From: Klebsormidium nitens
Lineage: Eukaryota > Plantae > Klebsormidiophyceae
NCBI GenBank assembly: GCA_000708835.1
Contig: DF237040.1
Location: forward strand, 1-64,000
Direction: 5' to 3'
Length of the DNA: 64,000 nucleotides
Shown here piece by piece: positions 34,531-56,025 of this stretch; positions within the stretch are counted from its first letter, which is position 1; each line of letters begins with the position of its first letter. The notes below the pieces were generated by a model. It did not search any database. It worked only from the letters and a program-made list of their open reading frames with translations, and was not told where the DNA came from. The translations under genes were made by a program, and so were the position numbers.

Positions 34531-35369
34531 GGCCGCCCTTTTTCTCTTACCGAAATGGTTGTCGTGAAAGCTTGTGTGACGAATCCACAGAATGAGAGGA
34601 CCTCTCAGTTTCAAAATGCGTCAATCCGGCCGCACACGATTCTGTCCGCTTCCTAGGACATTTCCGGCGGAACGTTCTAGGCCGTTCTGAAAGTCCCAGT
34701 GCGGACCAATTTCCCTGCAGAATTCACGACCCAAAAACCGCCGCATAGACTTACCACTTGGGCTACTCCAGCCACCAGCCACCGTACCACATATCCGACA
34801 AACTTGAGTGCCGTTTCTGAACTCACCGCTCGATGTACGGACCGTACGGTACTCCAATCAGCCCGAGGGGCGCGCGCGGGCATGTCGCCCGGCCGGGATG
34901 CAGCGCTTGCCGGCCGCGCTTTCGCGGTGCAGCCCGGCCGCCGGCCGGCAGGCGCAGAATGTACACGTAATAATGTGCCCAAATCGGCCCTGCGGAAAGA
35001 AGAGACATGGCATCGAGGCGATGACAATAAACGAAGACCTTCAGGACATGTGAAGTGGTAACTTGAGGTCTTGACTCCAGATTGTTTCCAAGGACATGCA
35101 CTACGGCTCCACCCGTTCCCATGGCGGTTACCATGGAATCTGGACTTCCTTGAATTGATTGTCGATCTGTCGACGACAGTGAAAAAGTCGGACTCTGCAA
35201 CTATGCTGCGGTCAAGGACCTGGAGGAACAAAGAAAGAAATTGCAAAGAAGAAATGACAAGTATTCTGTGTCGGAAGAAGCACTTGTGGAGAAGGTAACC
35301 GTCAGGATCATCCGAGTGTTGACGAGGATCATTGCCGGTGCTGAGGAAAGAGTCGTGCCGTTCGCCTCT

Positions 35370-36282
35370 ACTACCGCATCAAACACTTTGAACTTTTCTA
35401 CCAACAGCTCCTCCCCTGATTCCGCCATCGGCTTGTGCTGAAGAATCTCAATGCAGTCCCCATAGTAGTTGATTACACATGTCAAATGTCCTTCCCCACA
35501 GACATTACCAGTGATCCGCTCAAAGGCCTCCGATGAGAAGTCCCTGAAAAGTCCCACAAATTGAGACACTCCCTCACTGCAGGGAGCCAGGTTGTCCTCA
35601 AAGAAAGCATTCACTGAGAGCTCGAACGAGGGGGCACCGCACCTTGGCGGTCGTTCGCATGCTCTGCTGTTCCTGGGCCGATGCTTCGAAGTACCTGCTA
35701 GCCGTTAACTGCTTTGCGATCGCTGAATTGGGAAAGCCCTGAACCAGGCCCCGGCATGCCCCCAAAGGCAAATCCTCATCTTCGTCCTCTGAGGGGTGCG
35801 CACATATTCTGGTGACAAACAAGGGGTCCAGTCGGAACTGCGCCTTCAGCCGCAAGTCCTTTGCCGCAGCAGGTCCAGTCTAAAAGCCGCCAGCTTCTGG
35901 CTGCACATGGCCCAGCGAGTCTGAGCAGCTTTCGCTGCACTCAGAAACCTCCGAGCAATCTGAAGCACACCGCAAGTCTGGGCAATACAGCAAGAACTTG
36001 AAAACTCCTAGCCAGCCTCCTGGCGGCTGGCTAGAAGCTCCATTACCCATGCGTTAGCACAATGCTGGAGCCGCCTCCAAGCAAAGCTGCTGCAGAGTTT
36101 CTTCCTGCATTATCTTCCGCCAGGCTTTGCACACGCTGGGTAGTGCCTGCTAAGTGCATGGGGCTGGGGCCAAGTTCGAGGAAGATCTTACTGAGCAGTT
36201 CCGAGCCAAGGTCAAGAATGCTGCTTGTGCCAGCACAAGAGCTTTCAGATGCGCTGCGGGCCAGGCGCTTCATTGAGTCCAT
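35370..36282 (-). pseudogene. EID1-like F-box copy A, a 3'-truncated pseudogene and close paralog of copy E
   Basis: Near-identical to 52895-51965. It has a +1 nt near 36146, a TAG at 35880-35882 (CAG in E), a deletion near 35640 that shifts frame, and homology ends near 35370. Confidence 0.9.
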
Positions 36283-36928
36283 TGTGAGGAACACTCAGAT
36301 GATCGCTTGTTGAGAGTACACAACTGCTCAAGACAGCACCGCTAGAGCCCCCGCACAAGAACAGGCGCCAGGCGCTCTTGCTTTACAAACAGCTGCCCAC
36401 ATTGCCTGACTGTGATATGTAGCCTGACAGTGGTAGGCTTTAATAGCAGCTAAGCTCGCTCAGCTGCCTGATCACAGATCAGGCAGCTCGCAAGGAGAGC
36501 ACTCCCTCACCAGCAACTTGACCCTGTTTAATGCAGATCCAAACCCGATACCTGGCATGGAGGCGGGGGTTTTCACCGGGCATCTTTACCCCGATATAAA
36601 ATCACCCCCCGAGGAAAGGCTCCAAGGCATCAGTCAATGTCCGGCTTACATAACACGGAAGGTTAGCCCGACACGCTCCCTTCCTAGAGCTGCAGCCCTT
36701 CACATCTGCCATATGATTCTGAACGTGAAGAATGTGCTGAGCAGCTGGCGTCTGTGCTCAGATTGTCACTGTCAGCATTACAACAAAGGATTGTAGCGCC
36801 TTGCCTGCGTCCTGGCAGTTCCCTTCTTTTCCTGCAGCCACATACTTTTTCTGGTCTTGTGGTTGAGGCACACCAGTCCAGCAAGAAGCCAACCGCCGAA
36901 GGCTGCAGTCACTGGGTAGTCCATCGCA

Positions 36929-39122
36929 ATGGCTTCACAGCGCGTGACTCGCAGCGTGGCGCGCCGAGTCTCAGCCGCCACCAATGGCCGCATCTTCGAC
37001 CTAGGCCCGGAGTTGCTCAATCTTATCTTCACCAAGCTCGCACCCAGCCCTCTGAACTTGGCCGCAGTCCCCTGTGTTTGCCAAGCCTGGCGCAGAATAA
37101 TGCAGGAGCAGACTTGGCAGCAGCTGTGCCTGGAGGTTGCTCCGGGGTTGTGCAGAGCGCTGGGGTATGATGCAGCTGATGGGCCTCCTGGTGGCTGGGC
37201 GGCAATGTACAAGCTCCTCTTCTTCTGCGCGGCGCGTTTCCGCATGTCGTGGTACTTTGACGGGTGGAGCTCCCTAGGGCACGTACAGACACAGTCTAGC
37301 GGTTTCCAGACAGGGCCGGAGATCGCCTCAGACCTGCGCTTGAAAGACCAGTTCCGAAGGGATGTCCTGTTTGTTAGCCGACCGTGCTTTCACGGAGATG
37401 AGATCGGAGACCGGCACTCAACACGGATGCACGTGTGCCGGGGCCTGATCCCGGAAGTTGCCAAGTCGGCCCTTGCGAAACGGGCGGGGGCGAGGAAGTA
37501 CTCGGAATCACCTCCCGAGTTGCAGCAGAGGATGCGGGACTCAGCAAGCGACCGCTGTCAGTACTGTCAAGCACCTTCATACGAGCTTGAGTCCAGGGTC
37601 CTAGCTGATAGAGACTGTTCTTCCTCGGAGGACATGGATTCAGACGAGGAGCTAGAGGGGTTCGACTTCAGCGGTCATGTGTGTGGGAACGGGCACGTTA
37701 TGCTTGAGATTCTGGGTAATCTTGGTGAGACGCCGTTTTCCGGTGCAGAATCAGTGCGGGACGTCAGGGGAGGTCTCCCGGTAGAAACTAGTAAAACAAA
37801 GAAAGAGGTGTGTGGACTCTTTGGGTTGGACCCAACTGCTGAATTTGAACGCAAGCTATGGAAGAGTTTGGACGCGTTCTCGATGTTCAGGAAGCTGGAG
37901 TGCTTAGCGCGTGAGGTTCAGGAGAGAGGAGTCCTGACATATGAGATCTGTGAGGACACGGACAAGGACAGGGTGAGAACAAATTCCTCGACAGGGCGGC
38001 AAGTGATCCTTGACTTGGAGAGAGAACGGACGGGCTTAGAGAAGCAGATTATCAGAATCATTGAAGCTTTTGAGAGGGACTCAAAGGCGGACTCGGAAAC
38101 GGATTCAGAGGCTGACAGAGGACCTGGTCCATTCTGGCAGGTTTCTGCTGACGCCATCCAGTGCGTCAGAGATCTCCTGTTGGCAGTGCCCCAGTGTAAA
38201 AGGATCCTCGCTAGATTCCTGACCGGGAGTTGCAAGCGAAGTGTCGGGACGGTTCTGGCCAGAGTAGAGAGGCTCAAACTGCTGGGTTTGCGAAAGGCAC
38301 AGATCAGGAAGGCGCTTTGGCCGTTCCAGAGAAGAGGGGGGATGAGCCCTCGGAGGCACTTCTGAGGAACGCTGGTATACCCGCAGGATCTGACAAGTAC
38401 CAGTGGCCAGACACTGATTCCGTCTGCAAACACATCAATAAATGGTAAGTCGACCACTCGACCAATCCTGTGAGCTGTTCTTCTTGTGTGACTGCACTTG
38501 GGAGACAATGACTGTCAGCTTTGCTTTGACAGAGGGACGGATCTGCGGCACTCGAGTGGATGAGGGTCCGCATCCGATCGAACCTCATGTGCTGGCCCAG
38601 ACAGGTGGGCAGTTTGCAATCTGATGGATTTCGATCACGGTTTCGTACGGTTCGCCCTCACATTGTTGCACATTGAGAAGTTCTTGTTGTTTGACTGTAT
38701 CTGGCCCCACCAGCTCGGAATTCACCACATTTTCCAAACCTTGAGACAGAATGAACTCCGGCAGATGCAGAAAAGGTTCCTTCTGGTTTGCCACTCTACC
38801 TACATAATGGGCACACTCCCGAGTCAGGTGTTTCAGGATTTTCCTTGACGATAAGGCAGTCGCTTGAAAATTTTGTCTATATTTTGTCCACCTGGATGCT
38901 TTTAGTATTATGGTTTGGAATTCTGACGGACCTCTTCGCTGTTTTGTGCAGCACGAAGACATCGCGGCGGAGGAGGTTATCCATCGTCAGCGGAAAGCTA
39001 TAAAATCGGCGGAGGCAAGGATGGGCGCAGAAGGTAAGGCAAGACGCGGCGGCGGCGCTGGAAGAAAAACGGCCGCGCCCAGCAGAAGGCGTAAAGTAGG
39101 TGAAAGAAGGAAGATTCGTTGA
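36929..39122 (+). CDS. EID1-like (EDL) F-box copy B; 478-aa ORF 36929-38365 ending early through a -1 frameshift near 38315, with an orphaned last exon at 38952-39122
   Basis: F-box DLGPELLNLIFTKL..LAAVPCVCQAW and EDL motifs WQQLCLEVAPGL, GGWAAMYKLLFFC, LGHV, RDVLFVSRPCFH, CRGL, CQYCQA, HVCGNGHV. The shifted frame encodes EKRGD..AG..WPD as in paralog F. Confidence 0.85.
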
Positions 39123-41849
39123 TGAATATAGGATACTACTACCCACCCTACCACACCCTCTAGCTTGGCGGGAAGAGAAACCAGCGGCATGGCAGGGCGC
39201 AAAGAGACGGTGTAAAGTATTGTCAGCCCGTGGATTTTCCGGATGTGCCTACACATCTGAGGTTAGTTTGTAGCTCTCAAACTTCGAGCCACTTTGTCCG
39301 GTTTGCTGCACGAAAGAGTCGAGTCGGCTGCTGTGCCAAGTACTGTGACGCCATTTCTAGTTGGTTTCGGAACAGTGGATTGGCCTGTCGTCAGGATATG
39401 CCGTCCCTCTCTTTTTTCAGTATAGACTGCGGACGTCCGTACAGGTGTACGTTGTGTTTGCATCTGCGGACGGCGGCAGTCCTTACAACAACTAAACACT
39501 GCCCCGAGGCGACCTCTCTCAAACTCGCAATCACGGACGTCCGGATATGTTTACGTGGTCTTTGCACTCGCGGATGACGGCATCGGATTGGAGCACGAAT
39601 ATTGGTCATTTTGTTTTTTCTGCTCTATTGAACCGATCTTCTTATTTAGTCTACGATATATGTTTGGGGGCATAGGAAAGCGCTTGAACTATGGTGCCAG
39701 GGCCTCACAGTGAAGAGCGCTTGCACTCTTTCCATTGTATTCTCGAATACATGCTTTGCAGGCCCCTTCAAGACTTCCAGGCTCCCTGTATCACATACTG
39801 CCGGAGTCGACCAGACACGACGCCAGCGAGTAAACCGGGAAGCTGCGGCGCACTATCAATGTACGTATTCCCTCTTTGGCTTTTTTCTCGATCACTAAAA
39901 GCTACCAGCATGGTCTGCCTTGAGCGTATTTGGCAGGATATGATGTCTGCACCAAGGCATTCAAGGACGGTTTAGATCATACATTACAATCTGATGCAAT
40001 TTTACACAACCCTGCCCTTCTCCGCATTCAGCAGTCGGGCTCACGAACCTTCTTGGCAAATTTGCTTTCCGAGTCGGGCATTCCCTTTGTCGTTCACCCT
40101 GTCGGGTTAGAATCAGCGTTCCGAGCCTGACATGGGGGCTTGCCTGATAACCTCATGTCGCCTTCTTGCTTGTCATTGGATATAGTCATCGATCCCCTTG
40201 GTTCAGGAGATGCTAAAAAGCGGAAGCCTTGATTTCTGCAGCAAGGACAGGTGCCAAGAGTTGGAACGAGCCGGTGTCCATGCTCACGTCATACAAGTAG
40301 CAGGCCGCTGAAGCGGCTGCGGCGGATTGACACTAGAAGAGATGGGCCTCGAGCGACCGAAGCTGCGCATCGGCGCAGACTTTTGCTATCTGCTGCCGGC
40401 ACGAAGGTAAGACTATCAAGGGATTAACGAGCTAGACCGGCAGTCGCATCTTTAAAGTTGGACATCCGAACGGTCTTTGGCCTGTGATCATTACGTCCCT
40501 GTTCCTGCCGCCTGAGTTCGGAAGATTTGTGTCCAAAGTAATCGGACGACACTCTGGTCCCCTTCTAAGATGAGCCAGTAGGTCGCTCGTGCGCTGTACT
40601 CATGTTCAACGTGACTGGTGACAAACCCAAAGGACCCGCAGGCCGGATTCTTGCGCTTACTTATCCAGGTTTTTGTTGAATGAGTTGAGAGCACCAGCGC
40701 TTATCCGCTGCCAGTATACCTTTCTCGCTAGCTCATTCACCTTCCACTCTTCTCTTGTCTGCAGCAACAACGATAAGACCTGAAATAGAAGACAAAGAAA
40801 GGTAAGCTAGCTGGACTCTCACAGTCCCTGTAACAATTCGGGCAGCCATTGGAGTTTTGCATGCACCTCTTTTTCTCCTTGAAAGTTCTTTCCGTCCTTC
40901 GTGCAAAAGATAGTGAGCCCGTTCTCCGTTTGCTTCGACGATCTGCCCTCTGAGTTGTGACCGGCATTGCTCGTTGCCGAGAATCAGTGGTGCAACACCC
41001 CCTCTCCTGATCACTAACCGTGAACGGTCGCGTTTCTAACCGAATTCTGATTCTCTTCTGATGCAGGCAGTCGCAGGCAGTCAGCCAGATGTACCTTCAT
41101 TTCAAGGCACCATAGTTAGCCGTACACACTGTAGGCGTGTCCCCAGACTGATTCTATTGTTCAATACCAATCTGGTGAGCACGATCCGGACTGTGGCAAT
41201 GTACGACACCACCTTGAAACTAGATTCTTTGCCATTCGAAATCGTTGGTCGAAAACGCGCACTTCAAATCACTCAGGTTCGTCCAAAGTCTTTCGTTTGG
41301 ACGGTTGCCGCGTGCACCAGGCTTGTCTATGTCGAAAGAGTGCTCCCGTGAACTGGCCATAATCCGCCGTCAACGTCAGGTCGGCGTGCTCTGCAGCCGG
41401 CTTCCGAGGTTTGTGGAGGCAAAGCTTGAGAATGTTCTGCTGTATGACTTACTAATCGAAGTCGACTTCACCGATTGAAATTCACTGAGGAGAAGTTGCC
41501 TTTCCTGACGTCTTTCAGAGTGTGGTCTTCAGGTGTGTCCTTTTCGAGATCGATAATGTGAACGAAGCGAAGAAGGGTGAGCTCTTTTTATTTCAAACGT
41601 CTCCGGATAATCTTCGTTTCTTCCTGTCTTTCTTTCTTGGTTTCCTTGTTCGCCTGACGCATGCGGACGTCTTGCTAATGAAGGCAGCAAAGAGAACGCG
41701 GGCCATGCAAACCAAGTCAATCATGTATAAGCGGGTACTGCTTTAACGCTAGGCTATTCTTCAGGAACCGCAACCTGAGTACTCAAGCCGTAGATTCTTT
41801 TGCTATATTCCTGATGTTCTCTACGTTACGTTGCTCCGATATGCGCTCC

Positions 41850-42090
41850 GTTTCCAGTCCGGTTCCTGCGAACCGGAGCGGAACTCCTCCCCGGTTTGCA
41901 CGGACCGGGGCCTGAAACGGCTCCGGTTAGTCCCAGGTTTGCGCCAAACCCGTTCCGGTTCGCGGGTTCGGTTTGTGCGAACCGGACCCGCGAACCGGAT
42001 CAGCTCCGGTTCGCTGCGAACCGGCTCCGGTTCCTCCGCCACTTTTCCGGACCTGGCTGGGGGTCCGGTTCGGCTCCGGTTCGCGTGAAG
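41850..42090. repeat. CCGGTTC/GAACCGG-rich element with nested hairpins, resembling a TE subterminal region
   Basis: About ten (A/G)ACCGG/CCGGTT motifs occur in both orientations. Perfect inverted repeats are CCGGTTCGCGGGT...ACCCGCGAACCGG (41955-41998) and CCGGTTCGC-T-GCGAACCGG (42006-42024). Confidence 0.6.
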
Positions 42091-42278
42091 CATCATCTAC
42101 CTACAAGGCCGTCCGTCGTTCGGTCAGATCCTTCTAGTCGCAAGTCTGCCAGCGAACACAATCAGGTATTGGCTGTATCTTTCCAACCTGTGATTCTTGT
42201 CCGCCGTGGCGACTGTGACGGCACGCATAAGCGGTGAGCTCAACATCTGTATTCGAAAGGCATCGTGCGGCTTTGCAG

Positions 42279-42437
42279 GTTTCGGACGTGGGCTTCCTGC
42301 GGACCTTGGTCGCGTTCGTCACTATGGCCTTGGGGGTCATCGTGCTTTCGCCGACGTTCAGCTGGATCCCGTTCCACTCGCTGGTCAAGTCGGCGAACCA
42401 CGTGCAAACGCTGTTGCCAACGTGGGGGAACTTGTGA
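42279..42437 (+). other. Second copy of the EGY-like terminal coding exon, inside a duplicated segment 42090-42700 homologous to 29340-29950
   Basis: The acceptor GGCTTTGCAG| is intact and the ORF VSDVGFLRTLVAF...TWGNL* has the same 159-nt length as 29522-29680, with 5 substitutions. Confidence 0.9.
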
Positions 42438-43675
42438 AGTCAACCTCGCGAGGGCAACTTTAGCTACGTCAAAATATCCTTCTGTGACAAGTGCACTGAC
42501 TTAGAATAAGCACCGTAAGTTGAGCAGCTAAAGTTGAACCAGTAATCCTTTCAGAATCCGCCATGTCTGCGACGCGCCCTGGTTGCCAAGCGCCTCTCGA
42601 GACTAGACTATCACGAACGTGGCAGCAAGTGAGTCTGACCGTGTAGACCACGCTGGGGACAAATGGACAACGGTGAAATCTAACCAACTCTGAATGCAAT
42701 CCCGCGTACCACTGGTACATCTGGAACGTGATAACAAACGAGCTGCTGATACCATACAAAGTAGTTAGCTGCACCATGTATGCAATTGTAGCTGCACCAG
42801 GCATATGCAATTGCTTAATCTCAAGATGGTGCTCCTCTTAAAAGGCCTGGGCAGTGACCGTGGGCGGCCAAGGCCTTCGCTATTACCCTTCTTAAGCCAC
42901 ATGCCAGGTGCATCATTGCATCGACATGAGCTGGCTGCTTTTGATATAATCGATGCTTCATGTTGATGGACTGCATGCCTCAAACTTGAAGTCCGCCTGC
43001 ACTGACGTTTCATCATAGTCCGACGCAGCCTAGCCATTGTGGCTTAAAGCTAGGGTCGGAACCAGAATCACAAATATTTTGATGCAGCATATGCTGTATA
43101 TGACGTGCCAATGATGTCGCGTCGAGTTGATATCAGACTATCTTGACCACCATAACATGACTTGAAGTAGTTGTACGTATATACATCAAGCAATAACGTT
43201 ACATAGCTGCTGATAGTATACTTCAAGTGAGCCCGCGCGCTGCAGCTCTTTAGCGCTCTGCTCAGCACAAAGAAATACGAATTGCTGCCAAGCCTTTGGT
43301 ACCGGCCGTTTCAGCTAGCTGCACATGACCGACATATGATCATATCGATTAAAATAATGTATCATCGCTATCGCCATCAGCTTACATGCAGTCCGTGACA
43401 GTGTGGTTGCAACGTGACTCTCTCAAGATCCGACAAGGCAGACAGCTTCGACCACGACGCGACGTCCGTCTGCACCGGTACTTAGGAACCGGCATATCTA
43501 CTGACATACTTTGATACTTCTTTCCTGTTTCAGTGCGCATCAACTCCTTCCATCTACTGACCGTAACGATCAAACTCACAGGCACTTCGGACAAAAATTG
43601 TTCATCCCGAACAAATCCCGGCTGACGCAATCCTAGACTATCGCATGTACATTGTCACTCTACAGTCCTGACTCC

Positions 43676-46326
43676 TCAGTCCTTCTTATGCCGTTTGCAT
43701 ACCACGCCCATCGTGTATGTACGACAACAACTACCACAAGCTGAAAGGACACAGGCTTCCGAGCCAAGATTATTGCAGCTCTTCCCATCGGACGTGCCTC
43801 GGCAGACCGTGATCCCCTAGGACGCCCTGAAGTCGCGTTCCGCCGCTTTCTTTCGTTCCCGCCAAGCCTTCCGCTCTGCAGCCTTCGTTTCTTGCTCTGC
43901 CCTTCGCATGGCGGTGTCTCTTTCCCGTTGCGCTCGCTCTGCAGCCTTCTTCTCTTGCTCTGCAGCCTTCTTCTCTTCTGCTTCTAGAAAGCACTGCCGC
44001 TGGCGATCGACGGCTTCGTTCAGCAACACGTTCGGATCCTTGAAGAGGTCAACAACAGTCGTCAGTGGTGTGTCTGACTCGTCCCTTTAATTACTTGAAA
44101 CAAAGGCTCGGATGGATCTCAGCATACTGCAAGGTACCATTTCGCCATCTAAACGGCGGAATGGTGGTGGATCTTGAAGGACAAAGAGATGTGCGGGGCA
44201 ATCAATTTCAGCAGATTTGAATCTTCTCATCACAAAACGAGACTCATATCGGCAAAGTTGGAAGAGAGGAGCTAAAGCGATCTAGGCTACGAAAAAACCT
44301 TTCGATGTGTGACGGCCAACGGAGATCTAAAAAATTCAGAGCCGGTGTAGGATTTGCAAAAAAGGAGGACACGGTCAGAAAAGGTAAAGGTCCGACACAA
44401 GAGGACTACCTGCTTCTTCTCGCCAGCCTTAAATTCTGCCAAGAGTCTTCGACATCCAATTGTTCTCCCAGGCACCCAAACCAAGCACCCAAGATGTTGC
44501 ACGGGCCGAGATTGGATTCAAATCAGGTGCGAACTTCTCACATGTCGAGAAAAAGATAGTATATTCCCAACCGTTGTAGAAAGTATCAAACACTTAAACG
44601 GAATAGTATCTTGGGTGCGACTCACGTTACGGGGCCCAAGTCTGAAGCACTGACATGACAGCTCTTGGACCTGTGCCTAAAGCAACCAAAGTCTTTTCAA
44701 TGCAACCAATCGAGTCTTCTGGCAACTTACCTTGATGTAGCTCTGAACTGCGTCAGGGAGAGGCCATTCACCACCACGTTTCTCTACGCCGGCAGCCGTC
44801 AGAGCCGCCTCGATCTCCGCCTTTCGCTCCTGCTTCATCTCCTCAAGCTTGCGCACTGCTTCGGTTCGAAGAACTAACTGATGGTCCATGTTCTTACTCG
44901 TCCTGACAACCATCCGAGCACTCGGGTTTGGCTTGTCATTGCTGAGGTAAGTATACACCATCTGCGCAGCGTTTAATGCCAACGACTCGTTCTGGAAGCT
45001 CTTCACAACCTCAAGGTCGTCAAATGGAACGCTCCAGAAAGGAGGCTCTTCCTTGATCTCCTCATCTGCTGCAGAACCGCTCTCTGAATCTGCAGAGTTG
45101 GCACCGTCGCCTTCGTTGGAACTCTCAGAATCCTCAGAGCTGTCCTCGTAATCCTCCTGGAAACTGTCCTCGTACATTTGCTTAAGATCGTCCATGCGTC
45201 TCTCTAACTTAGGTATCACTTCCACGAAATCAGATATTGTATGCAAGTGCCTTAAAAAGCAGACTAACTCGCGCCCTTCTTCATCCTCCTCATCAATAAC
45301 AAACATTCCAATCTCATTAGCTAGGCGTCCCAGTTTCTGAGAGAGTGTGTACGGGTTCAAGTCCCTCCAAAAAGTAAGCTCGCAGAAGTCGTGTTCCTTT
45401 GGATCAAGCTCCTCGCACACTCGTTGCAGGAGTTCACAGGTTTCTACCTGAAGACCCTTCCCAGACCCAGCCATTGGCGTGCCATCAAGGAACGAAGCCT
45501 CATCCCAGTTGCCAAAGACTTCGAATGTCAGATGCCCATTCCCACACACCTGTCCTGTCACATCGAACCAGTCTGGAATACATCTATCAAACAGTTTCTG
45601 CCACCACGAACGAAAGCTCTCTTGGATGTCAAAGAAGACATCCTCCCGCAGCTCAAACACGGGCGCCCCACAAAATGTACAAGGATCATTGGCCGTCCCC
45701 CGCATCAGCTGCTGTTCTTCAAAGGATGCCTCTGCGTACTTGCTTGCCCCTGACTCTCTTGCGATGGCTGAAACAGGGAAGTTCTGCACAAGGCCCCGAC
45801 AGGCGCACACGGCGAGTCTCATATCTTCATCAAGCCAAGCGTGCTGACACAGTTCCGTAACAAAGAGGCAGTCCCGTTGGAACGGCTTCTTCAGCAGCAA
45901 GTCCCTTGTAACATAAGGTCCCGTTTGGAAGCCACACGCTTCTTCTTGCACATGCCCCAACAAGTCCAGGCAGCTTCCATAATCCCCGTCCCAGTTGATA
46001 TACGATGTTGGAAGGCCCTGCATGCCTGGGCAATACAGCAGCAGTTTGAAGAGAGCCAACCAACCCCCTGGGGGTTGACTGGTCACGTCACACCCCATCT
46101 TCTCACACAGACCAGGGGCGATTTCTAGACAGAGCTGCTGATAAGTGACCTCTTGCATGACGGTGCGCCAAGCTTTGCACACACGGGGAAGCGCTGCCAA
46201 GTGGACAGGGCTGGGGCCAAACTTGTGAAAGATGATACCGAGCAGTTCTGAGCTGAGGTCGCCTATCTCAGTTCTGCAAGCTGAAGGACCAGCGATCACG
46301 CTATGAGCGTGGCGCTTCAACGCCAT
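43676..46326 (-). CDS. EID1-like F-box copy C; exon 1 46326-44731, exon 2 44038-43676 (coiled coil plus zinc finger) with an in-frame TAG at 43817-43819
   Basis: EDL motifs are present in ORF 44677..46380. The donor YIK|GTAAGT joins in phase 0 to DPNVLLNEAV...RAS*GITVCRGTSDGKSCNNLGSEACVLSACGSCCRTYTMGVVCKRHKKD*. The acceptor is AAG and inferred from paralog E. Confidence 0.85.
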
Positions 46327-46908
46327 CTTGTCAAACGTGTAAGCAAGCTGATGCGATTGCCCTTGAATTTGCAGCTTCAATGCCCCTACTGCGAGAAGTG
46401 GAAGCCCACCCGCGATCGTCTCTCTACTTTCTCCTCCTTTGAACAGAAAGCAATTCTGACCAACTTTGTGCCCCTCCAGAAGGGGTCCAGAAGTGCCCCT
46501 TAAAGTTAGGGTTGGCTGAACCCTAGAACATCAATAGCGAGCCAGTTGTTGTTACCCCCTTACTCGATTGCTTTCTTGGGGAGTCCTACCGAGAATATCC
46601 GGATAATTGTCATGCTTGCTTGCGGCCCGTTTTGCTCTGTCATGCAAGGGACACGTTGCTCTGCATACCGTACTCTGGACAGCCATTGCAACTACAAGTT
46701 CAAGAGATCATTGGTGAAAGTTCTGGGCCTGCATGAGCAGTGGTAGGGCGGCCATCTGATCTCGGAGCCCGCAGCTGCTCTCAAATCCCGGAGCCTTTCC
46801 CTTGAAGCTGTTTAATGGCGCCACAACTCCAAGTGCGGCGTCGCTTGATCGAGCCTTGATCGCCGCTTTCGGATGAGTGGAGCTTTCTGGCACTCTGACA
46901 TTGTAGGG

Positions 46909-49178
46909 ATGGCGTCAAATCAGGTGAAGCGCAATCTCATGCGCCGACCCTCAGCCAGCACCACTGACATGTGCGACCTGGGCCCAGAATTGCTCAGTCT
47001 CATCCTCAGAAAGCTCCCCACCAGCCCCGTCTATTTAGCGCCACTCCCTTGTGTCTGCAGAGCCTGGCGCAACGTGATGGAGGAGGAAATCTGGCAGCAC
47101 TTCTGCTTGGAAGCAGCACCAGGGCTGTGCGAAGCATTGGGATATGGCGCAGCTTGTGAGCCCCCCGGAGGCTGGGCGGCATTCTTTGCACTGATTGTCT
47201 ATTGCCCGGGATTGCGCGGCACGTCCATCGTTGGGGATAGAGCTTGTCGCTGGTGGGAAGGCACGTTGGGGCATGTGCAGGAAGAGACGCATGGTTTTAG
47301 GATGGGGCCAAAGATCATGCGTGATTTGGGTCTAAGGGAAGGTTTCCGGGGGGATACTTTGTTTGTAAAGTGAGGCTTGCGAGCATGGAAGTCACTCTAA
47401 CCTTGAGTTGACCCATGTGTCCCGGGGCGTTATCAAGAATGTCGCCCATTCTATTACAGCAGAACGAGCAGGGGCAACTGAGTATTTTGATGCGTCCACT
47501 GAAAAGCAGCGAAAGATGCGGATGAGGGCTAAAAATTGCTGTGTGTACTGCCGAGCACCCTTGTTTCGGCTCCGGCAAGGTCTTTTCTTCAAGAAAGAGG
47601 AGGATTACTTCAATTGTCTACTAATCGATGCCAAGTACTATGACGCGAGTGGTCATGTCTGCGGGAACGGTCACCTCATACTTGGTCTGCAGGGATACTG
47701 GAAGAACCACCCGTTCTTCTGTGCTGAAGAGGTGAAGGGATCTGGCAAGGGTCTCAGCATCAGAACCTCAGATCTGGTGAAGGACGTCTGCGATGCGTTT
47801 GGGCCTTGTGATACCAATGGTCTGCCTGAAGTTGCATTCTGGAAGGATCTAGATGCCTTCGATGTGTCCGAGAAGCTCGAGTGTCTAGCGCGTCTTATTA
47901 AAAATAGCTCCTGTGAGGCGCAACTAGAGGAGACTGGAGCCGCGTGTCCAAGACAGCCGCAAGCATTGTCCAAATTGCAGTGGGAGCTGCATCATTTGAA
48001 GTTACAGATCAGCGAAGTTGCTAGAGACTTTGAGGACAATTGCAAGGAACAGCCAGAGTGCAATCAAAAGGAATCGGTGTCAGGTAGCGACGTGGACTTG
48101 GACTCAGAGCTGGAGGAAGGATCAGAGACGAACTCGGAGTTGAAAGTTGGACATCAGGACGACAAGAAGTATACTTATCACTTTTGGGAGGCTGGGTGCA
48201 TGAACTTGTATCCTGTTTGCGCCTTTGTGAGAGGCATGCCCCAGGCAAGAAGAATCATCACAAGGGTCCTGAGGAACAGGAATCAAAGTGCTCAAAGAGC
48301 TTTCGATGCAGTCCAATACTTGAAGAGACTACAGCTTCGCAGAGACCAAGTTCAGAGTGAACTGGATACGCTGAAACGAAGGAGGAAGGGCATCGAGGCT
48401 GCTCTGGAAAAGGCTGGCATACCTGCATGCCTAAGCTCGCAGCATGGAAAGTGGCCGGACTCAGACGTTGTTGACAAATACATTCTGGTGAGTTTCACAT
48501 AACACTCGGGTATAATTCCACCTTGTGTCCTTAACTGCAGACTCTTTGATATATTATGACGCCTACTCTTGTGACAGTATGCTATTCTTAGGACGGGGTA
48601 AGTTGTATTAAGCTTCTTGTATGGGCCAGTCTGGACGCCTTGGTGGTTGCAGTCTTTTTGAAACTCAAGGGCTTATGCAGGACGGTTTTAAAAGGCAATA
48701 GAGAATCAATCATTCAATCGTTTTTAGGCCTTTTTGTTCTGAATATTTTGCCTTTCTGTTATTGATCCTCGAGAATTTCCCACGCAATCGTTTGTTGTTT
48801 TGGTGAGGAATCAGGCCGCCTTGGTCTTCTTGAGTACTGAGATTGTTCAATTTTACCTTCGGACAGACGAGTTAAAACGTAGGCTCGGTTCAAAGGAGGA
48901 TGTGGTTTGAGCAATCATTGCAGTGATTCGATCAAAAAGCAGAGAGCTTGGATCGAAGGAAGAATTTTCAGTTGGCAATTGAGCCGAGTCGTTTGAGGAA
49001 TATCGACGTGGGTTATTACCTGACTGTTTGCACCTCCTTTTTGAAGGACGAGAGCATGACGGTCGATGAGGTCATCCAGAGCCAGCAGGAACATATGCTG
49101 GGAGGGGCGGCAAGGAGACCCGGCCCAAGAACGAGAGGCGAAGCAAAGAGCACGGCAAAGAGAGAGGGTCAAAGGTAG
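46909..49178 (+). CDS. EID1-like F-box copy D; exon 1 46909-48487 with a +1 frameshift near 47368, exon 2 49047-49178 (basic tail)
   Basis: ORFs 46873..47373 and 47408..48502 join if one A is removed from GTAAAGT, giving LFVSEACEH. The donor KYIL|GTGAGT joins DESMTVDEVIQSQQ...KREGQR*. Confidence 0.85.
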
Positions 49179-50522
49179 GGCATAGGAAGAAGGAACAAGT
49201 GCGGAGCTTCATTGGCTCGGCTAGGCAGAAGAGGTGACACAAAAAGCGAAGCGAGCGCAGCGCAGCGCCGCAAGTCTGTTGCAGGTGCCGGAGTAACCTC
49301 AGATTACAGTAGGTGAATTCGATTACATTTGTATCTGCTTTGCGTGTGGCTACTTCCGATCCTGCTACCCCAGTACTTCATAATTAACGCTCCGTCATGC
49401 AAGTGTCAAATTTGACAGAGGGCAAGGATCGCCCGTTGCCCAGGCTGCCACGTGGTCAACATCAATTGGAGACCAGCTCGTCCATTCAAATGACGCTTTC
49501 TAAACATGGGCTCATCGAAGCACCGGCGGGCCCGTAACCGCGAGCTGCATGACGGGCACAATCTTTGTGCTACTACAATAATGTCGACTTAAATCGCACT
49601 GATTATCAGAATACTGTGGAGAATTATCTCAAGGCGCTGCGCTGCCTGCCAGTGGTATCGACCGTATGAAGTGCATCAGTGCAGGGACGAGTGCGAAGTA
49701 TAAGGGACTCGGATCTAAAAGGCATGCTAGCCTGCTGCACACATCTGACTGGATGCTATGTGATGGCTTAGATGCATACGCGTACTTCCATGCAGGCTCG
49801 AGTCCGATCATGTACGTGTTGGCTCATGCAGCATGGCATGGTCCGATCGCACTGAATCACTCATGTGCATGTCGGACGTGGCGCCCGGCCGATTGGTATT
49901 GCTTAGTGCAAGGCCATGCTCTCTGGCATAGCATGACATGTTGGCCGGACACCTAATTTGCATGATCCGAACTTAATTGGCTTCTGAACTGCATGAGCTG
50001 TCTTCGAAACGCGTTGTCATATCATGCTTCATAAGGGCATGTCGAGTTGTCTGAGTATTTAACAGCTTCGATTACCAAGCCCGGTTTCAAGGTCCAACCA
50101 AACACTCAGTCAAGCTCTCTTCGTAAACTCGCGAACGGACATTTGATTGGGAGGCTTAACTTCAGTGCAGATCCAATAACCGTCTCAATTTCGATCATAC
50201 CGCACGCGCTCTGAAATCGAATGCAAGAGCCGATCTTCCCGCCGCCTGGCAGGGTTTGATACTCTGATTGCAATGGCTTGGGCTTACAACCCCGTACACA
50301 CGGATTCGATGAGTAAAGAATGGGTAAAGAAGTTCGCATCGCAAGCCTGCAACTTTCAAAATTTTCAAACGGAGATTGATAAGACCGTCACCGGGCCAAT
50401 ATTCATGTTGCAAACGGGCAGATCACCTCTTTAGGCTCTTTCAAACTACTCTGATGTCCTACACTTTGTTATAACTGCAGTGGCCGTTAGCTAGTCCATG
50501 TGATTGCATTCGTGGATACTCC

Positions 50523-52895
50523 TTATCGTCGTTTGTGTCGGCGGCAACCTCCCGTCGCGTATGTGCGACAGCAAGCACCGCAAGCCAGACGCACACAAGC
50601 ATCTGAGCCCGTGTTATTGCATTTCGTCCCGTCTGCGCTGCCGGGACACACTAGTTGCGATGCTCTGCTTGCCCGCTTTTCCGCCACCTCTAGTTGCCGT
50701 CGAGCCTTCCGTTCAGCTTCTCGTGCCTCGTGCTCTGCCTTGCGCTTGGCCTTCTCCCTATTTTGCGCCGCTTGCTCTGCGGCCCTCTTTTCCTCCACCT
50801 CTAGCCATTTCTGCCGCACGCTTTTGACGGTCTCCTCCAGCGACCTGTTAGGATCCTGCAGACGACCAAACGGAACTCGTCGGGATCTGCTTTATTGGAT
50901 GTTAGATGCGACTCGAGAGGAAGATTTGAGATTGAGTCCTTTCCAGGATCTAACTAAAGACATATGGTCGAAAAGCTTCAACATCAGAAGAACAGCTCGA
51001 GCTGATAACGAAGTATTTACAAAGCAGCTTGCATCTGACTTCGCACCTATTTTCAGCTTGATTTTGCATGTAATGACGCTCTCGAAACGAGAAATAATGG
51101 CCAGACACGAGCAGATCTTGGTCAGTGCAGTGCACTCATGACTCCAAAAAAGCTATGTCATCAGAACGAACCCTCCAGACTTGAAATTGGGGCCAGAATT
51201 CTTACCTCCGAAAATGTGACTAGAAGAAACTAATCGATTGTTACGTTGTTGAATCACAAGTCCAGATTGGTGTCGTGAAAGCAGCATATCAAGTCCACCC
51301 GAGCACACTTTACGTTGACTCAAACACTTCTGACGATCTTCCAGCATGAGCTTACCTTGACAAAGCTGTACACTGCCTCCGGTTTTGGCCACGCCCCACC
51401 GCGCTTGCACACGCCAGCCTCCTCAAGCGCTCCCTCAATCACAGCCTTCCGATGCGCTTCCATCTCCTCGAGTCTGTGCATGACCTGTTCTCCGATGGAG
51501 TTCAGTCGTTTCAGGTTTCTGACCGTTCGCAAAACCATTTGAGCACTCACCGTGTTTCGACTGAGATAAGTAGCAAGAATCCCCACCCGGTCGTTGGGCA
51601 CTGCTGTCAAAAGGTCCATCACTATGTCTATTTCTTCGACTGGAACCTCCCAGAAAGGGGTGTCAAAATCCTCCTCCTCTTCAGCTTCTGAGTCAGAGTC
51701 TGACTTAGGTGACTCTCTCAAAGCCGTCCTCAAAATCCTTCATGACCTTGCAAGTCAGTCTCGCTATTTCTGGTATACCATTGATGAGTTCCGGCATCGT
51801 TTGCAACCTTGCTAAGGGGCGGAGCTCTTCTAATGTATCCTCCTCATTAGAGGTTTCGTACTCTGTCTCATCTGCCAAGCGCTGCAGCTTTTGCGACACC
51901 GTGAAAGCGCCAAGATGCTTTCGGAAGTCTATTTCATCGTCGCCATCCAGCTCGTCTTCAAAGGTCGCTACCAATGCATTAAACACCTTGAACGTCTCTA
52001 CCAACAGCTCCTCCCCGGATCCTGCCATCGGCTTGTGCTGAAGAATCTCAATGCAGTCCCCATAGTAGTTGATTACAAATGTCAAATGTCCTTCCCCACA
52101 GACATTACCAGTGATCCGCTCAAAGGTCTCCGATGAGAAGTCCCTGAAAATTTCCAGGAATTCAGACACTCCCTCACTGCAGGGAGCCAGGTTGTCCTCA
52201 AAGAAAGCATTCCCTGAGAGCTCGAACAAGGGGGCACCGCAGAAAGCGCATTTCTCCTTGGCACTCTCCTGCATGCTCTGCTGTTCCTGGGGCGATGCTT
52301 CCAGGTACCTGCTCGCCTTTGACTGCTTTGCAATCGCTGAGTTCGGAAAGTCCTGAACCAGGCCCCGGCATGCGCCCAAAGGCAAATCCTCATCTTCGTC
52401 CTCTGAGGGGTGCTCACAAACTCGTGTGACAAACAGGGGGTCCTGTCGGAACTGCGCCTTCAGCCGCAACTCCTTTGCCACTGCAGGTCCAGTCTGAAAG
52501 CCGCCAGCTTCCTGCTGCACGTGGCCCAGTGAGTCCGAGCAGCTCACATTACCCTCAGAAGCCTCCCAGCAATCTGACGGACGACGCAAGTCTGGGCAAT
52601 AAAGCAAGAACTTGAAAACCTCTAGCCAGCCTCCGGGGGGCTGGCTAGAAGCTCCATACCCCATGCACTCGCACAATGCTGGAGCCTCCTCCAAGCAAAG
52701 CTGCTGCAAAGTTTCTTCCTGCATTATGTTCCGCCAGGCTTTGCACACGCTGGGGAGTGCTGCCAAGTGCATGGGGCTGGGGCCAAGTTTGAGGAAGATG
52801 ACATTGAGCAATTCCGGGCCCAGGTCTTGAATGCTGTGTGTGCCAGCAGAAGCGCCCCCAAACACGCTGCGAGCCAGGCGCTTGATCAATTTCAT
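50523..52895 (-). CDS. EID1-like F-box copy E; exon 1 52895-51356 with a frameshift in a GA repeat near 51715, exon 2 50855-50523 (coiled coil plus zinc finger)
   Basis: ORFs 51705..52895 and 51320..51733 join across GAGAGAG. The donor FVK|GTAAGC joins CAG|DPNRSLEETV...CPGSADGTKCNNTGSDACVRLACGACCRTYATGGCRRHKRR*. Confidence 0.85.
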
Positions 52896-53558
52896 TGTGA
52901 GGGAACTTTCAAGTCACTGGTTGAGAGTACACAATTGCAAAGACACCACCGCTGGAGCCCGCAGACAACAGGAGGCGCTAGGCGCTCTTGGTTTACCGTC
53001 AGCTGACCACATTGCCTGACTGTGATATGTAGCCTGATATCAATAGGCTTAGCAGCTAAGCTCGCTCAGCTGCGCTCAGCTGCCTGAACAGGCATGCAGC
53101 TCGTTGAGAGCACTCCCTCATCAGCAACTTGACCCTGTATGATGAAATCAAACCCGATACGTGGCATGGAGGCGGGCATTTTCACCGGGCATCTTTTACC
53201 CGTATAACATTATTCCCCGAGGAAGGGCTCCAAGGCATCAATCAATGTCCCCTTTGCATAACAGGGAAGGTTAAGTTTAACCCGACATGCGCCCTAGCTG
53301 CAGGAGCCCTTCCTAGCTGCAGCCCTTCGCATCTGCCATATGACCTTGATTCTGAACTTTGAAGATTGTGCTGAGCAGCTGAAGTCTGTGCTCAGAATCT
53401 CAAGGTTACGAAAGATTGCAGCGCGTTGCCTGCGTCCTGGCAGGCCCTTCTTTTCCTGTAGCCACCACGCTTTTCTGGTCTCGTGGTTGATGCACACCAA
53501 TCCAGGCAGAAGCGAAGCGCTGAAGGCTGCAGTTTGCGTCACTGGAGGGTCCAGCGCA

Positions 53559-56025
53559 ATGGCTTCAAAGCGCGTGACTCGCAGCGTGGCGCGGCAAGAC
53601 TCAGCCGCCGCCACAGGCATCTCCGACATAGGCCCAGAGTTGCTCAATCTTGTACTCACCAAGCTCGCACCCAGCCCTCTGAACTTGGCCGCAGTCCCCT
53701 GTGTTTGCAAAGCCTGGCGCAGAATAATGCAGGAGCAGACTTGGCAGCAACTCTGCCTGGAGATTGCTCCGGGGTTGTGCAGAGCGCTGGGGTATGATGC
53801 AGCTAGTCAGCCTCCTGGTGGCTGGGCGGCAATGTACAAGCTCCTCTTTTTCTGCCCGGCCCATTTCCACATGTCCTGGTACTTTGACGGGTGGAGCTCC
53901 CTAGGGCACGTACAGACACAGTCCACCGGCTTCCTGACAGGGGCGGAGATTGCCGCAGAGTTGCGCTTGAAAGATCGGTTCAAAAGAGTTGTCCTGTTTG
54001 TCAGCCGACCGTGCTTTCACGGAGATGAGATAGGAGCCCGGCATGCAACACGGGTGCACACCTGCCAGGGCCTGCTTCAGGATGTTGCCAAGTCAGCCCT
54101 TGCGAAACGGGCGGGGGCAAGGGAGTACTCGCAAGCACCTCCCGAGTTGCAGCAGAGGATGCGAGAGTTAGCGAGCGACCGCTGTCAGTACTGTCAAGCG
54201 GCTTTATATGAGCTTGAGTCCAGGGTCCTGGCTGATAGAGAGTGTTCTTCCTCGGAGGACATGGACTCGGACGAGGAGGGGCTAGAGGGGTTCGACTTCA
54301 GCGGTCATGTGTGTGGGAACGGGCACGTTATGCTTGAGATCCTGGGTAATCTGGGCGAGACGCCATTTTCCGGTGCAGAGTCAGTGCGTGAAGTCGAGGA
54401 AGGTCGTCCTGTAGAAACTAGTAAAGTGAAGAAAGAGCTGTGTGGACTCTTTGGGTCGGACCCAAATGCTGAGTTTGAACGCAAGCTGTGGAACACTTTG
54501 GACGCTTTCTCTATGTTCAGGAAGCTGGAGTGCTTAGAGCGAGAGTTTCAGGAGAGTGGATTGAAAGATGAGATCTGTGAGGACACAGATGAGGATGGCG
54601 AGGAGCGAATAGTGCACAGCCCGCGGCATCGGATTCCTTGAGAGGGCGTCAGGTGTTGGCTGACTTGGAGCAAGAATGGTATGACATGGAGAAGCAGGTT
54701 GTCAGCACTGTTGAAGCTTTTGAGAGGGACCTTGATGAGGACTCAGAACCGGTTTTAGGGGCTGATACAGAATCTGTCAGGGAGTCTGGTCCATACTGGG
54801 AGGTTTCGGCTAGTGAAATTCAGTGCGTCAGGAAACTCCTGAACGTTGAGCCCCACTGTACGGATATCTTCGCCAGATTCCTGGCCGGGAGTTGCAAGCG
54901 GAGTGCTAGCGTGGTTTTGGACACAGTGAAGAGGCTGAAACTGCTGAACTCGCCCCAAGAGCAGATTAGGAGTGAACTGCAAGCGATCCGGGAAAAGAGG
55001 GGGGATGAGGTTGGAGCAGCGCTGCGAGTTGCTGGATTACCCGAGGGATCTTACTCGAACCCTTGGCCGGATTATGAGTCCGTTCGCAAATACATCTATA
55101 CGGTGAGTCGTTGTGAGCTGCCGTATTTTGTGTGATTGCACTTGTGGGACTATGACTGTCAGCATTGCTTCGGAAGAAGATGGATCTGTGGCACCCAGCG
55201 GAGAAGGGACACCATCCGATCACATTGCTGTTATGTGCTGGCTCAGACTCAAGGCAGAAACGCATTTCATATGCTTTTCCGTCTGCAAATACATCAGATT
55301 GGTGAGTCGACCAGTTGTCCGATGTTCTAAGCTGTCGTCATTGGGTGACCGCACTTCTGAAACTGTGACCGTAGCTGTCAGACTTGCTTTGGACGAGTGA
55401 TGGAGTTTCCGCCACTCCAGCATAAAAAGGGACATCATCCAATAGACGATCAGGGCTGGTCTGCAAAGGAGGGCAGAACGCAATCCGTATGGATCACGCC
55501 TTTCCAATGGTTCGTTCTCACATGATTGGAGATTGAGATGTTTTTCTGTTGAACCGTGATCTGGCTGCCCGCTGGGGCGTCTCTAGGGTTTTATTAAGAG
55601 ACGTTGGACTCTGGCAGATGCTGCAAAGTTCCCTTTCAATCTATAAAGGCAGAGGTCGGGTTAGAAAGGTCGTTGAGAAGCTTTGCTATGGTCTGTCTGG
55701 CTTGCCACTTTACCGGGATTTTGACAAAAGGGCACGCTCCCTAGTCAGGTGCTTCAGAGCTTTTTCTTGACGAGAAGGCAGTCGCTAAAAACTCATTCAG
55801 AATCTGTCCACCTGAATGTGTCCCAAGTGTAAGCGACTAAAATCGGATGGACTTCTTCGTTTTTGTGTGAAGTCCGAAGACATCTCGTTGGAGGAGGTGA
55901 TCCGCTGTCAGCAGAAAGCCTTAAAAACGGCGAAGGCAAGGAAGGGCGCAGAAGGTGAGGCAAGACGCGGCGGCGGCGCTGGGAAGAAAACGACCGCGCC
56001 AAGTGGAAGGCGTAGCAAGAGGTAA
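53559..56025 (+). CDS. EID1-like F-box copy F; exon 1 53559-55102 with a -1 frameshift near 54620, exon 2 55873-56025 (basic tail)
   Basis: Close paralog of copy B. ORFs 53340..54641 and 54638..55135 are colinear with B. The donor KYIYT|GTGAGT joins SEDISLEEVI...GRRSKR*. Confidence 0.85.

Follow-up and report, generated by a model that had tools for sequence, protein, structure and literature searches.

Six EID1-like F-box genes in three divergent pairs

The window analysed here is a stretch of 64,000 nucleotides from Klebsormidium nitens scaffold DF237040.1 (strain NIES-2285), and all coordinates refer to the whole of it. It contains six homologous F-box genes of the EID1/EDL family, lying as three divergent pairs where an earlier note on this DNA had placed them. 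All six start codons are ATG: A at 36282 (minus strand) and B at 36929 (plus), C at 46326 (minus) and D at 46909 (plus), and E at 52895 (minus) and F at 53559 (plus). The ATG-to-ATG spacers of A-B, C-D and E-F are 646, 582 and 663 bp, exactly as first reported. A body of about 520 residues and the position of the last intron are common to all six genes. At the N-terminus, the F-box profiles PF12937 and PF00646 match B, C, D, E and F with E-values from 5e-6 to 8e-3, some of these matches being slightly under the gathering score; the F-box of the homologue P0007 is over the cut-off, with 37.7 bits. The F-box is followed by an EID2_C domain (PF27778), with precomputed matches for C, E, F and B and for all homologues. 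The nearest Atlas clusters, named 'EID1-like F-box protein 2' and 'Phytochrome A-associated F-box protein', score 0.93-0.95 and carry PF27778 in 100% of cases. The domain matches and cluster names uphold the proposed EID1-like assignment; the earlier note had described a small land-plant family, but the organism is a streptophyte alga. By their domains, the six products are presumed to be SCF substrate adaptors. At least 11 family copies are present in K. nitens, many with lesions, and six of them form the divergent pairs. The family profile covers 535 positions and includes a conserved C-terminal helical domain and a tail exon, rather than the compact EID1/EDL architecture of about 250-390 aa. 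The first 345 residues of C, modelled with AlphaFold2 (mean pLDDT 57.8), matched no PDB fold, and neither did a model of the C-terminal part of the intact homologue KFL_000910160 (pLDDT 79.8), a helical bundle with a 65-residue helix in which the finger described below is unmodelled. PDB sequence searches gave weak F-box matches only.

The genes fall into two clades, A, C and E in clade I and B, D and F in clade II, and inspection of the last exons bore out the two tail types noted before, a coiled coil plus Cys/His finger on the minus strand vs a short Lys/Arg-rich tail on the plus strand. In clade I, E (KFL_000910100) has its main exon at 51355..52895 (minus strand), with a frameshift near 51716-51728, and its last exon at 50523..50854 (minus), which encodes the coiled coil and a Cys7His finger. 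The cysteines of the clade I finger are spaced as C-x7-C-x4-C-x2-CC-x7-C-x2-H, and the finger tail has no match in Pfam or NCBIfam even at E<=10, PF05142 included. The main exon of C (KFL_000910080; 44731..46326, minus strand), with 532 codons, is the sole uninterrupted main open reading frame among the six. Its last exon (43685..44038, minus) encodes the coiled coil at 43817-44038; the earlier note had C ending in a finger, but as assembled this part is lost behind an in-frame TAG (43817-43819), and only a remnant, still recognisable and conserved, lies 3′ of it (43685-43813). A (35366..36282, minus) is a copy of the 5′ part of an E-type gene and has decayed into five reading-frame pieces. 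As had been noticed, it is truncated and E-like: it has 83% amino-acid identity to E and is cut at 35366-35368, at position 307 of the family profile, which is the edge of a segmental duplication.

In clade II, the main exon of B (36929..38444, plus strand) is frameshifted near 38315 and differs from F by 2 nt directly before the predicted donor; the B-specific bases were found in one RNA contig. The last exon of B, with the short Lys/Arg tail, is predicted at 38952..39122 (plus); it would fit neither of the two upstream frames if splicing took place at the homologous sites. The main exon of D (46909..48487, plus) has a 1-nt frameshift at about 47365-47369, at profile position 155/156, and then a stop at 47371-47373; its predicted last exon with the short Lys/Arg tail (49047..49178, plus) is in phase with the downstream frame. 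The main exon of F (53559..55102, plus) spans KFL_000910110 and the next annotated model, with a frameshift between 54605 and 54629. It is joined to a last exon with the short Lys/Arg tail (55873..56025, plus) across a GT..AG intron (55103-55872) seen in RNA contigs from three studies, in which the last intron of E (50854 to 51355) is also spliced out.

Duplication of the pairs and their spacers

The family tree comprises 18 rows and is unrooted, without a land-plant outgroup. Clade I consists of (A,E) and a group of C, P0002 from a second Klebsormidium-like assembly (the relative) and KFL_000910160 (support 100/99), and clade II of D with the relative's L005 partner, and of (B,F) with the relative's P0009 (support 97/96). 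Region trees agree with the full tree. The two subtypes thus form reciprocal clades, the tree test that the earlier note had proposed, and pair partners are never grouped together; independent inverted duplications, in which partner should group with partner, are contradicted by the tree and by an AU test that rejects a C+D lineage clade (p=0.00017). The topologies of the two clades mirror each other, and the stretch 35368-39358 is a segmental copy of 51968-56266 with about 81% nucleotide identity, spacer included, in agreement with the earlier suggestion that the pairs were duplicated as units. In the second assembly, the same head-to-head pairs of a clade I and a clade II gene lie on contigs L005 and L010, and the layout has been kept in both pair lineages across dS of about 0.6-0.8. 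Five other K. nitens family members are solo. Since segmental duplication of a whole unit keeps the orientation by default, the layout alone is no proof of function.

The A-B spacer (36283..36928) is a paralogue of the E-F spacer (52896..53558), with about 81-91% identity in blocks, and the C-D spacer (46327..46908) has a block at 46499-46526, CTAGGGTT..AACCCTAACTTTAAG, whose conservation extends to the orthologous spacer of the relative. Candidate conserved blocks in the E-F spacer lie at 53107-53134, 53217-53224 and 53281-53290. RNA contigs from three studies end within this last spacer, stopping at about 52981-53036 on the E side and starting at about 53353-53367 on the F side, although contig ends do not mark exact transcription start sites. 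RNA depth is about zero over 53118-53304, and transcription of E and F runs outward from a gap of about 320 bp that is itself not transcribed. It is therefore plausible that the two genes share a divergent promoter; the bidirectional promoter proposed earlier is indicated by the transcript ends for E/F, and A-B and C-D would have it by analogy.

Selection acting on a shared promoter, and not inertia, could be the cause of the kept layout and the short spacer blocks. If so, the pairing would have been kept for co-regulation only, by a compact bidirectional promoter serving proteins that do not interact. The E-F gap, bounded by transcript ends that agree among three studies, the blocks shared with the relative inside this gap and the C-D spacer, and the similar spacer lengths (582-663 bp in all pairs) are consistent with this. 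However, the blocks are short (12-28 bp) and barely beyond chance at such divergence, contig depths are no measure of co-expression, orientation is preserved by segmental duplication anyway, and the decayed partners show that the second gene is dispensable. Selection for co-regulation alone is accordingly a rather unlikely reason for the arrangement.

Lesions and the fate of the cluster

The frame breaks in B, D, E and F were absent from the first reading of the sequence. Those of E and F are unchanged in independent DNA and RNA contigs: one independent DNA-like and three RNA-like runs have no indels there, and assembly error was rejected for these two genes. This confirmation covers E and F, and the frameshifts of B and D and the stop of C are given as assembled. 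Small introns at the breaks were also considered and rejected, because the family profile is gap-free across each break and RNA contigs are collinear over those of E and F; the sole candidate intron at the D break would be only 43 nt. As read from their frames, B, E and F can encode at most truncated proteins with the F-box and EID domain, and D not even that. D, E and F have one lesion each, and their downstream reading frames are open and conserved; truncated or alternative products of some of the three may still be of use. The lesions are considered young, because dN/dS is 0.2-0.45 throughout.

With frame lesions or truncation in five of the six copies, the whole cluster might be taken for a transcribed pseudogene graveyard with no function left. 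This is improbable, since the main exon of C is intact and has a dN/dS of 0.33 against its orthologue, dN/dS stays within 0.2-0.45 throughout, and D, E and F have only single lesions despite a dS of 0.34 between B and F, whereas the truly neutral A has at least four within 900 bp; moreover, the reading frames of E, F and B would still suffice for an F-box and EID domain of about the size of a land-plant EID1.

The earlier note had likened the pairs to paired immune receptors and suggested that the two products cooperate or heterodimerise as SCF adaptors; the layout would then be kept as both proteins are needed. The reciprocal clades with mirrored topologies, the same pairing in the second lineage and the transcription of both E and F in three studies are compatible with this. 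But such an obligate pair is highly improbable, because both partners are intact in none of the pairs that can be evaluated: C adjoins D, frameshifted at codon 155, the orthologue of C in the relative adjoins a truncated remnant of D type, and A has decayed next to B. In addition, the clade I gene KFL_000910160 is intact but has no F-box neighbour. It is similarly hard to credit that a finger-bearing clade I gene and a finger-less clade II gene are a selected two-gene module under one promoter, acting together and older than the split of the Klebsormidium lineages, in which case the lesions in NIES-2285 would be recent and strain-level. If this were true, the module could be, for example, a heterodimeric SCF receptor of which only one subunit has a nucleic-acid- or protein-binding finger.

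Most probably, the EID1/EDL-type F-box genes of this locus instead form a birth-and-death cluster that arose by one old inverted duplication and duplications of the whole unit and is now decaying. A single old inverted duplication would have given a head-to-head pair, in which the clade I partner kept the long last exon with the coiled coil and Cys-rich finger, and the clade II partner has the short basic tail. The whole pair would then have been duplicated at least twice: the first duplication, earlier than the split from the second Klebsormidium-like lineage, would have produced the C-D and E-F lineages, and a second, more recent one would have produced A-B from E-F. Whole-segment copying would have retained the orientation and the spacer, which presumably is the divergent promoter, as the transcript ends suggest for E/F and as may hold for A-B and C-D. 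The decay is seen in the fragment A, the frameshifts of B, D, E and F, and the finger of C lost to a stop, and nothing indicates that the partners need one another.

Comparison with known systems

To our knowledge, the EID1/EDL F-box family has so far been studied only in flowering plants, and a literature search on EID1 in Klebsormidium or streptophyte algae and on head-to-head F-box paralogues found nothing relevant. The family is present and locally expanded already in a streptophyte alga, with a longer architecture in which the C-terminal helical domain is combined with one of two tails, the Cys finger or the basic one. The analysis corrects several database gene models; it opens no new mechanism.

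Arabidopsis EID1 and EDL1-3 resemble the Klebsormidium proteins in having an N-terminal F-box and then an EID-type domain (PF27778, EID2_C), and for both the presumed role is that of SCF substrate adaptors. EID1/EDL proteins of land plants bind SKP1/ASK and act in phytochrome A, clock or ABA signalling, and the Klebsormidium proteins may or may not do the same. In contrast, the Klebsormidium proteins have about 520-620 aa, vs 233-385 aa in the land-plant clusters listed, and are extended by an acidic linker, by the helical domain at the C-terminus and by a tail that is spliced on from an exon of its own; their genes differ by the copy number, the many lesions and the divergent pairing given above. 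The Cys spacing of the clade I tail is like that of the SHI/STY/LRP1-type zinc finger (DUF702, PF05142), and DUF702 Atlas clusters are weak leads from the finger (feature score 0.82; structure TM 0.51). However, the finger is part of an F-box protein in Klebsormidium and of a transcription factor in SHI/STY/LRP1.

In head-to-head NLR pairs such as RRS1/RPS4 and RGA4/RGA5, both partners are required and retained. The Klebsormidium pairs share with them the divergent orientation, the short shared spacer, duplication as a unit, one member from each of two clades in every pair, and a layout kept across lineages. They lack the retention of both partners intact: whereas NLR pairs keep both, A-B, C-D and the relative's pair orthologous to C-D each include a gene that has clearly decayed, so that decay of one is repeated, and solo members exist. 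Tandem F-box arrays in plants, which undergo birth-and-death evolution, are similar in local segmental duplication, fast divergence (dN/dS in the range given above) and frequent young pseudogenes. The Klebsormidium unit differs from such arrays in being an inverted two-gene module with differing C-terminal exons that is conserved in a second lineage, and it is a clean example of an inverted two-gene unit that spreads by segmental duplication and then decays.

Six EID1-like loci and two tail subtypes

The translation of gene C is GenBank protein KFL_000910080 of Klebsormidium nitens. Used as a translated query, it detects six homologous loci and none further in the whole window, and the same six are found by a family profile HMM on six-frame translations of the window. 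These genes, A to F, form three divergent pairs with start ATGs at 36282 (−; A) and 36929 (+; B), 46326 (−; C) and 46909 (+; D), and 52895 (−; E) and 53559 (+; F), as implied by the spacers of 646, 582 and 663 bp in the earlier note. F-box matches are weak to clear in B to F, a precomputed match to PF27778 ('EID2_C') is carried by every database homologue, and the nearest protein-language-model clusters are 'EID1-like F-box protein 2' and 'Phytochrome A-associated F-box protein' (score 0.93–0.95). On these similarities, assignment of the six genes to the EID1-like F-box family stands; the host is a streptophyte green alga and not a land plant. Upstream of the cluster lie ORF fragments of two ordinary neighbour genes, matching the Ras family (10615–11115, −; E = 8e-16) and the pfkB carbohydrate kinase family (15033–15644, −; E = 1e-23).

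All members share a body of ~520 residues consisting of an F-box, an EID domain with invariant Cys/His positions, an acidic linker and a PFW-led helical domain that terminates in 'WP....V..YI', and a canonical GT donor follows immediately at the identical place in all of them. The last exon opens with a related motif, [DE]..V..E[VA][IV]..Q, in every member and then diverges: in C and E it continues into a Lys/Arg/Glu helix of ~65 residues and a Cys7His finger, whereas in B, D and F it stops after ~40–55 Lys-, Arg- and Gly-rich residues. The two tail subtypes distinguished previously are therefore real. Gene C had been described as ending in a coiled coil plus finger, of which only the coiled coil holds for the assembled gene, because an in-frame TAG (43817–43819, −) precedes the well-conserved finger coding stretch (the two spanning 43685–43819). 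This TAG replaces a Gln found in KFL_000910160, directly before the highly conserved part; either the finger was lost very recently, or the TAG may be a fault of the assembly or a peculiarity of the strain. In the C orthologue of a second Klebsormidium-like assembly (the Logan assembly of SRR23617307, hereafter the relative), the tail exon itself has decayed.

Duplication history of the pairs

For the tree, each frame piece was aligned to the family profile and the pieces of one gene were merged into one row with gaps at the breaks; search queries were single ORF pieces or database proteins, none joined or frame-corrected. In the unrooted ML tree of 18 rows, the A/C/E type (clade I) comprises (A,E) and (C, the relative's P0002, KFL_000910160) with support 100/99, and the B/D/F type (clade II) comprises (D, the minus-strand partner at the relative's L005) and ((B,F), the relative's P0009) with support 97/96. 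Grouping of partners within pairs is ruled out, as it appears in no tree built from the N-terminal, the middle or the C-terminal third alone and a clade of the C and D lineages is rejected by the AU test (p = 0.00017). The same tests uphold the supposition that the two subtypes form reciprocal clades.

Because the topology of one clade is the mirror image of the other, the pair appears to have formed first, and duplication of the complete pair would then have given rise to the lineages C-D and E-F. This duplication would be older than the divergence of the relative (dS 0.6–0.8 between orthologues), and A-B would have been derived from E-F later (dS about 0.26–0.34). In DNA self-comparison, 35368–39358 (A-B) is a segmental copy of 51968–56266 (E-F) with ~81% identity including the spacer, in further agreement with duplication as a unit, and A terminates precisely at the edge of this copy. 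dS between B (36929–38444) and F (53559–55102) is uneven, 0.22 over codons 1–340 and 0.55–0.79 downstream, which could reflect gene conversion of one duplicated unit by the other within their 5′ halves. The long finger tail is present also in the P0012/P0004 clade, sister of clade II, so that clade II, with its short tail, has probably lost it secondarily, a polarity that hangs on the unrooted tree.

Transcription, spacers and lesions

Contigs from four public runs of four studies, one DNA-like and three RNA-like, were mapped onto 50500–56100, the E-F region covered by the RNA evidence. Spliced RNA contigs join 51355 to 50854 in E (GT..AG, minus strand) and 55102 to 55873 in F (GT..AG), confirming both last introns. 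E-side RNA contigs stop at 52981–53036 and F-side ones start at 53353–53367, and at 53118–53304 RNA depth is ~0 and DNA depth normal; in 3/3 studies, the transcripts of E and F therefore run outward, away from a ~320-bp gap that is not transcribed. B is transcribed too, since one RNA contig differs from F at 13 positions and is identical to B at all of them. RNA contigs of 50500–56100 support neither the internal intron by which the database model of E (KFL_000910100, 50523–52664) bypasses the frameshift, nor the first exon overlapping E in that of F (KFL_000910110, 52726–56025), nor the division of F into two gene models. RNA contig depth, which cannot rank expression levels, is ~16–20 in the last intron of F (55175–55735) vs 74–89 in exon, and ~4 in that of E (50874–51247) vs 23–28; some transcripts may be unspliced or retain the intron, or the runs may contain some DNA.

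The spacers of A-B and E-F are paralogues of each other along their whole length. Between the E-F spacer and that of the relative's L010, similarity is confined to short blocks at 53107–53134, 53217–53224 and 53281–53290, all three within the untranscribed gap, and a 28-bp block with CTAGGGTT..AACCCTAACTTTAAG in the C-D spacer (46499–46526) is kept in the relative's orthologous L005 spacer. The latter block, in mid-spacer, is near-palindromic with a telo-box-like AACCCTAA. Only modestly beyond chance at this divergence, the blocks are candidate promoter elements.

Lesions are found in all pairs. A (−) is broken into five reading-frame pieces and ends at profile position 307 of the family HMM. 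B (+) has a frameshift near 38315 and, compared with F, 2 extra nucleotides ahead of the donor, so that, given homologous splice sites, its tail exon would continue neither of the two upstream reading frames. D (+) has a 1-nt frameshift and then a stop (~47365–47369, profile position 155/156). The frameshifts of E (~51716–51728, −, profile position 394) and F (between 54605 and 54629, +, profile position 361/362) recur without indels or splicing in an independent DNA-like run and 3/3 RNA-like runs, and are real in the sequenced strain. Single lesions are frequent across the family: K. nitens P0012 (L008 10001–11570 and 12151–12459) has a frameshift at profile position ~413 with its finger tail exon intact, and in-frame stops interrupt otherwise conserved ORFs once in a metagenome contig gene (L004 9459–9464) and twice in a gene of the relative (L012 7284–7286, 8310–8318). 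dN/dS is 0.2–0.45 between paralogues as well as between orthologues, also in the stretches that follow the shifts, and D, E and F carry one lesion each vs at least four within 900 bp in A at similar dS. Most lesions are thus young, and moderate constraint acted on the genes for most of their history. An F-box plus EID-domain protein of about land-plant EID1 size could still be made from B, E and F, but not from D.

Pairing and the nature of the cluster

The earlier note had proposed a cooperating or heterodimeric SCF pair. This functional claim is not supported, because the partners have decayed independently of each other, some clade I genes are intact where an intact partner is missing, and the divergent layout is preserved by default under segmental duplication. 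At the relative's L005, the C orthologue stands head-to-head with a truncated D-type remnant; at its L010, the B/F orthologue P0009 faces a clade I-like N-terminus cut off at the contig end. Five further family members in K. nitens (KFL_000910160, KFL_000910260, P0007, P0012 and P0013) stand without an F-box gene beside them; one of these, KFL_000910160, belongs to clade I and is intact, finger included. The note's description and evolutionary inference (two subtypes, reciprocal clades, unit duplication and shared divergent promoter) withstood its own grounds for refutation. The locus is best read as a birth-and-death F-box cluster of an ordinary kind, in which the two-gene repeat unit is unusual and conserved and the EID1-like architecture is extended. 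The finger of this architecture, spaced C-x7-C-x4-C-x2-CC-x7-C-x2-H (P0003 residues 556–617; window 50535–50621, −), gave zero matches in Pfam and NCBIfam, and its likeness to a known system consists of weak leads to SHI/STY DUF702 (Atlas 0.82; TM 0.51).
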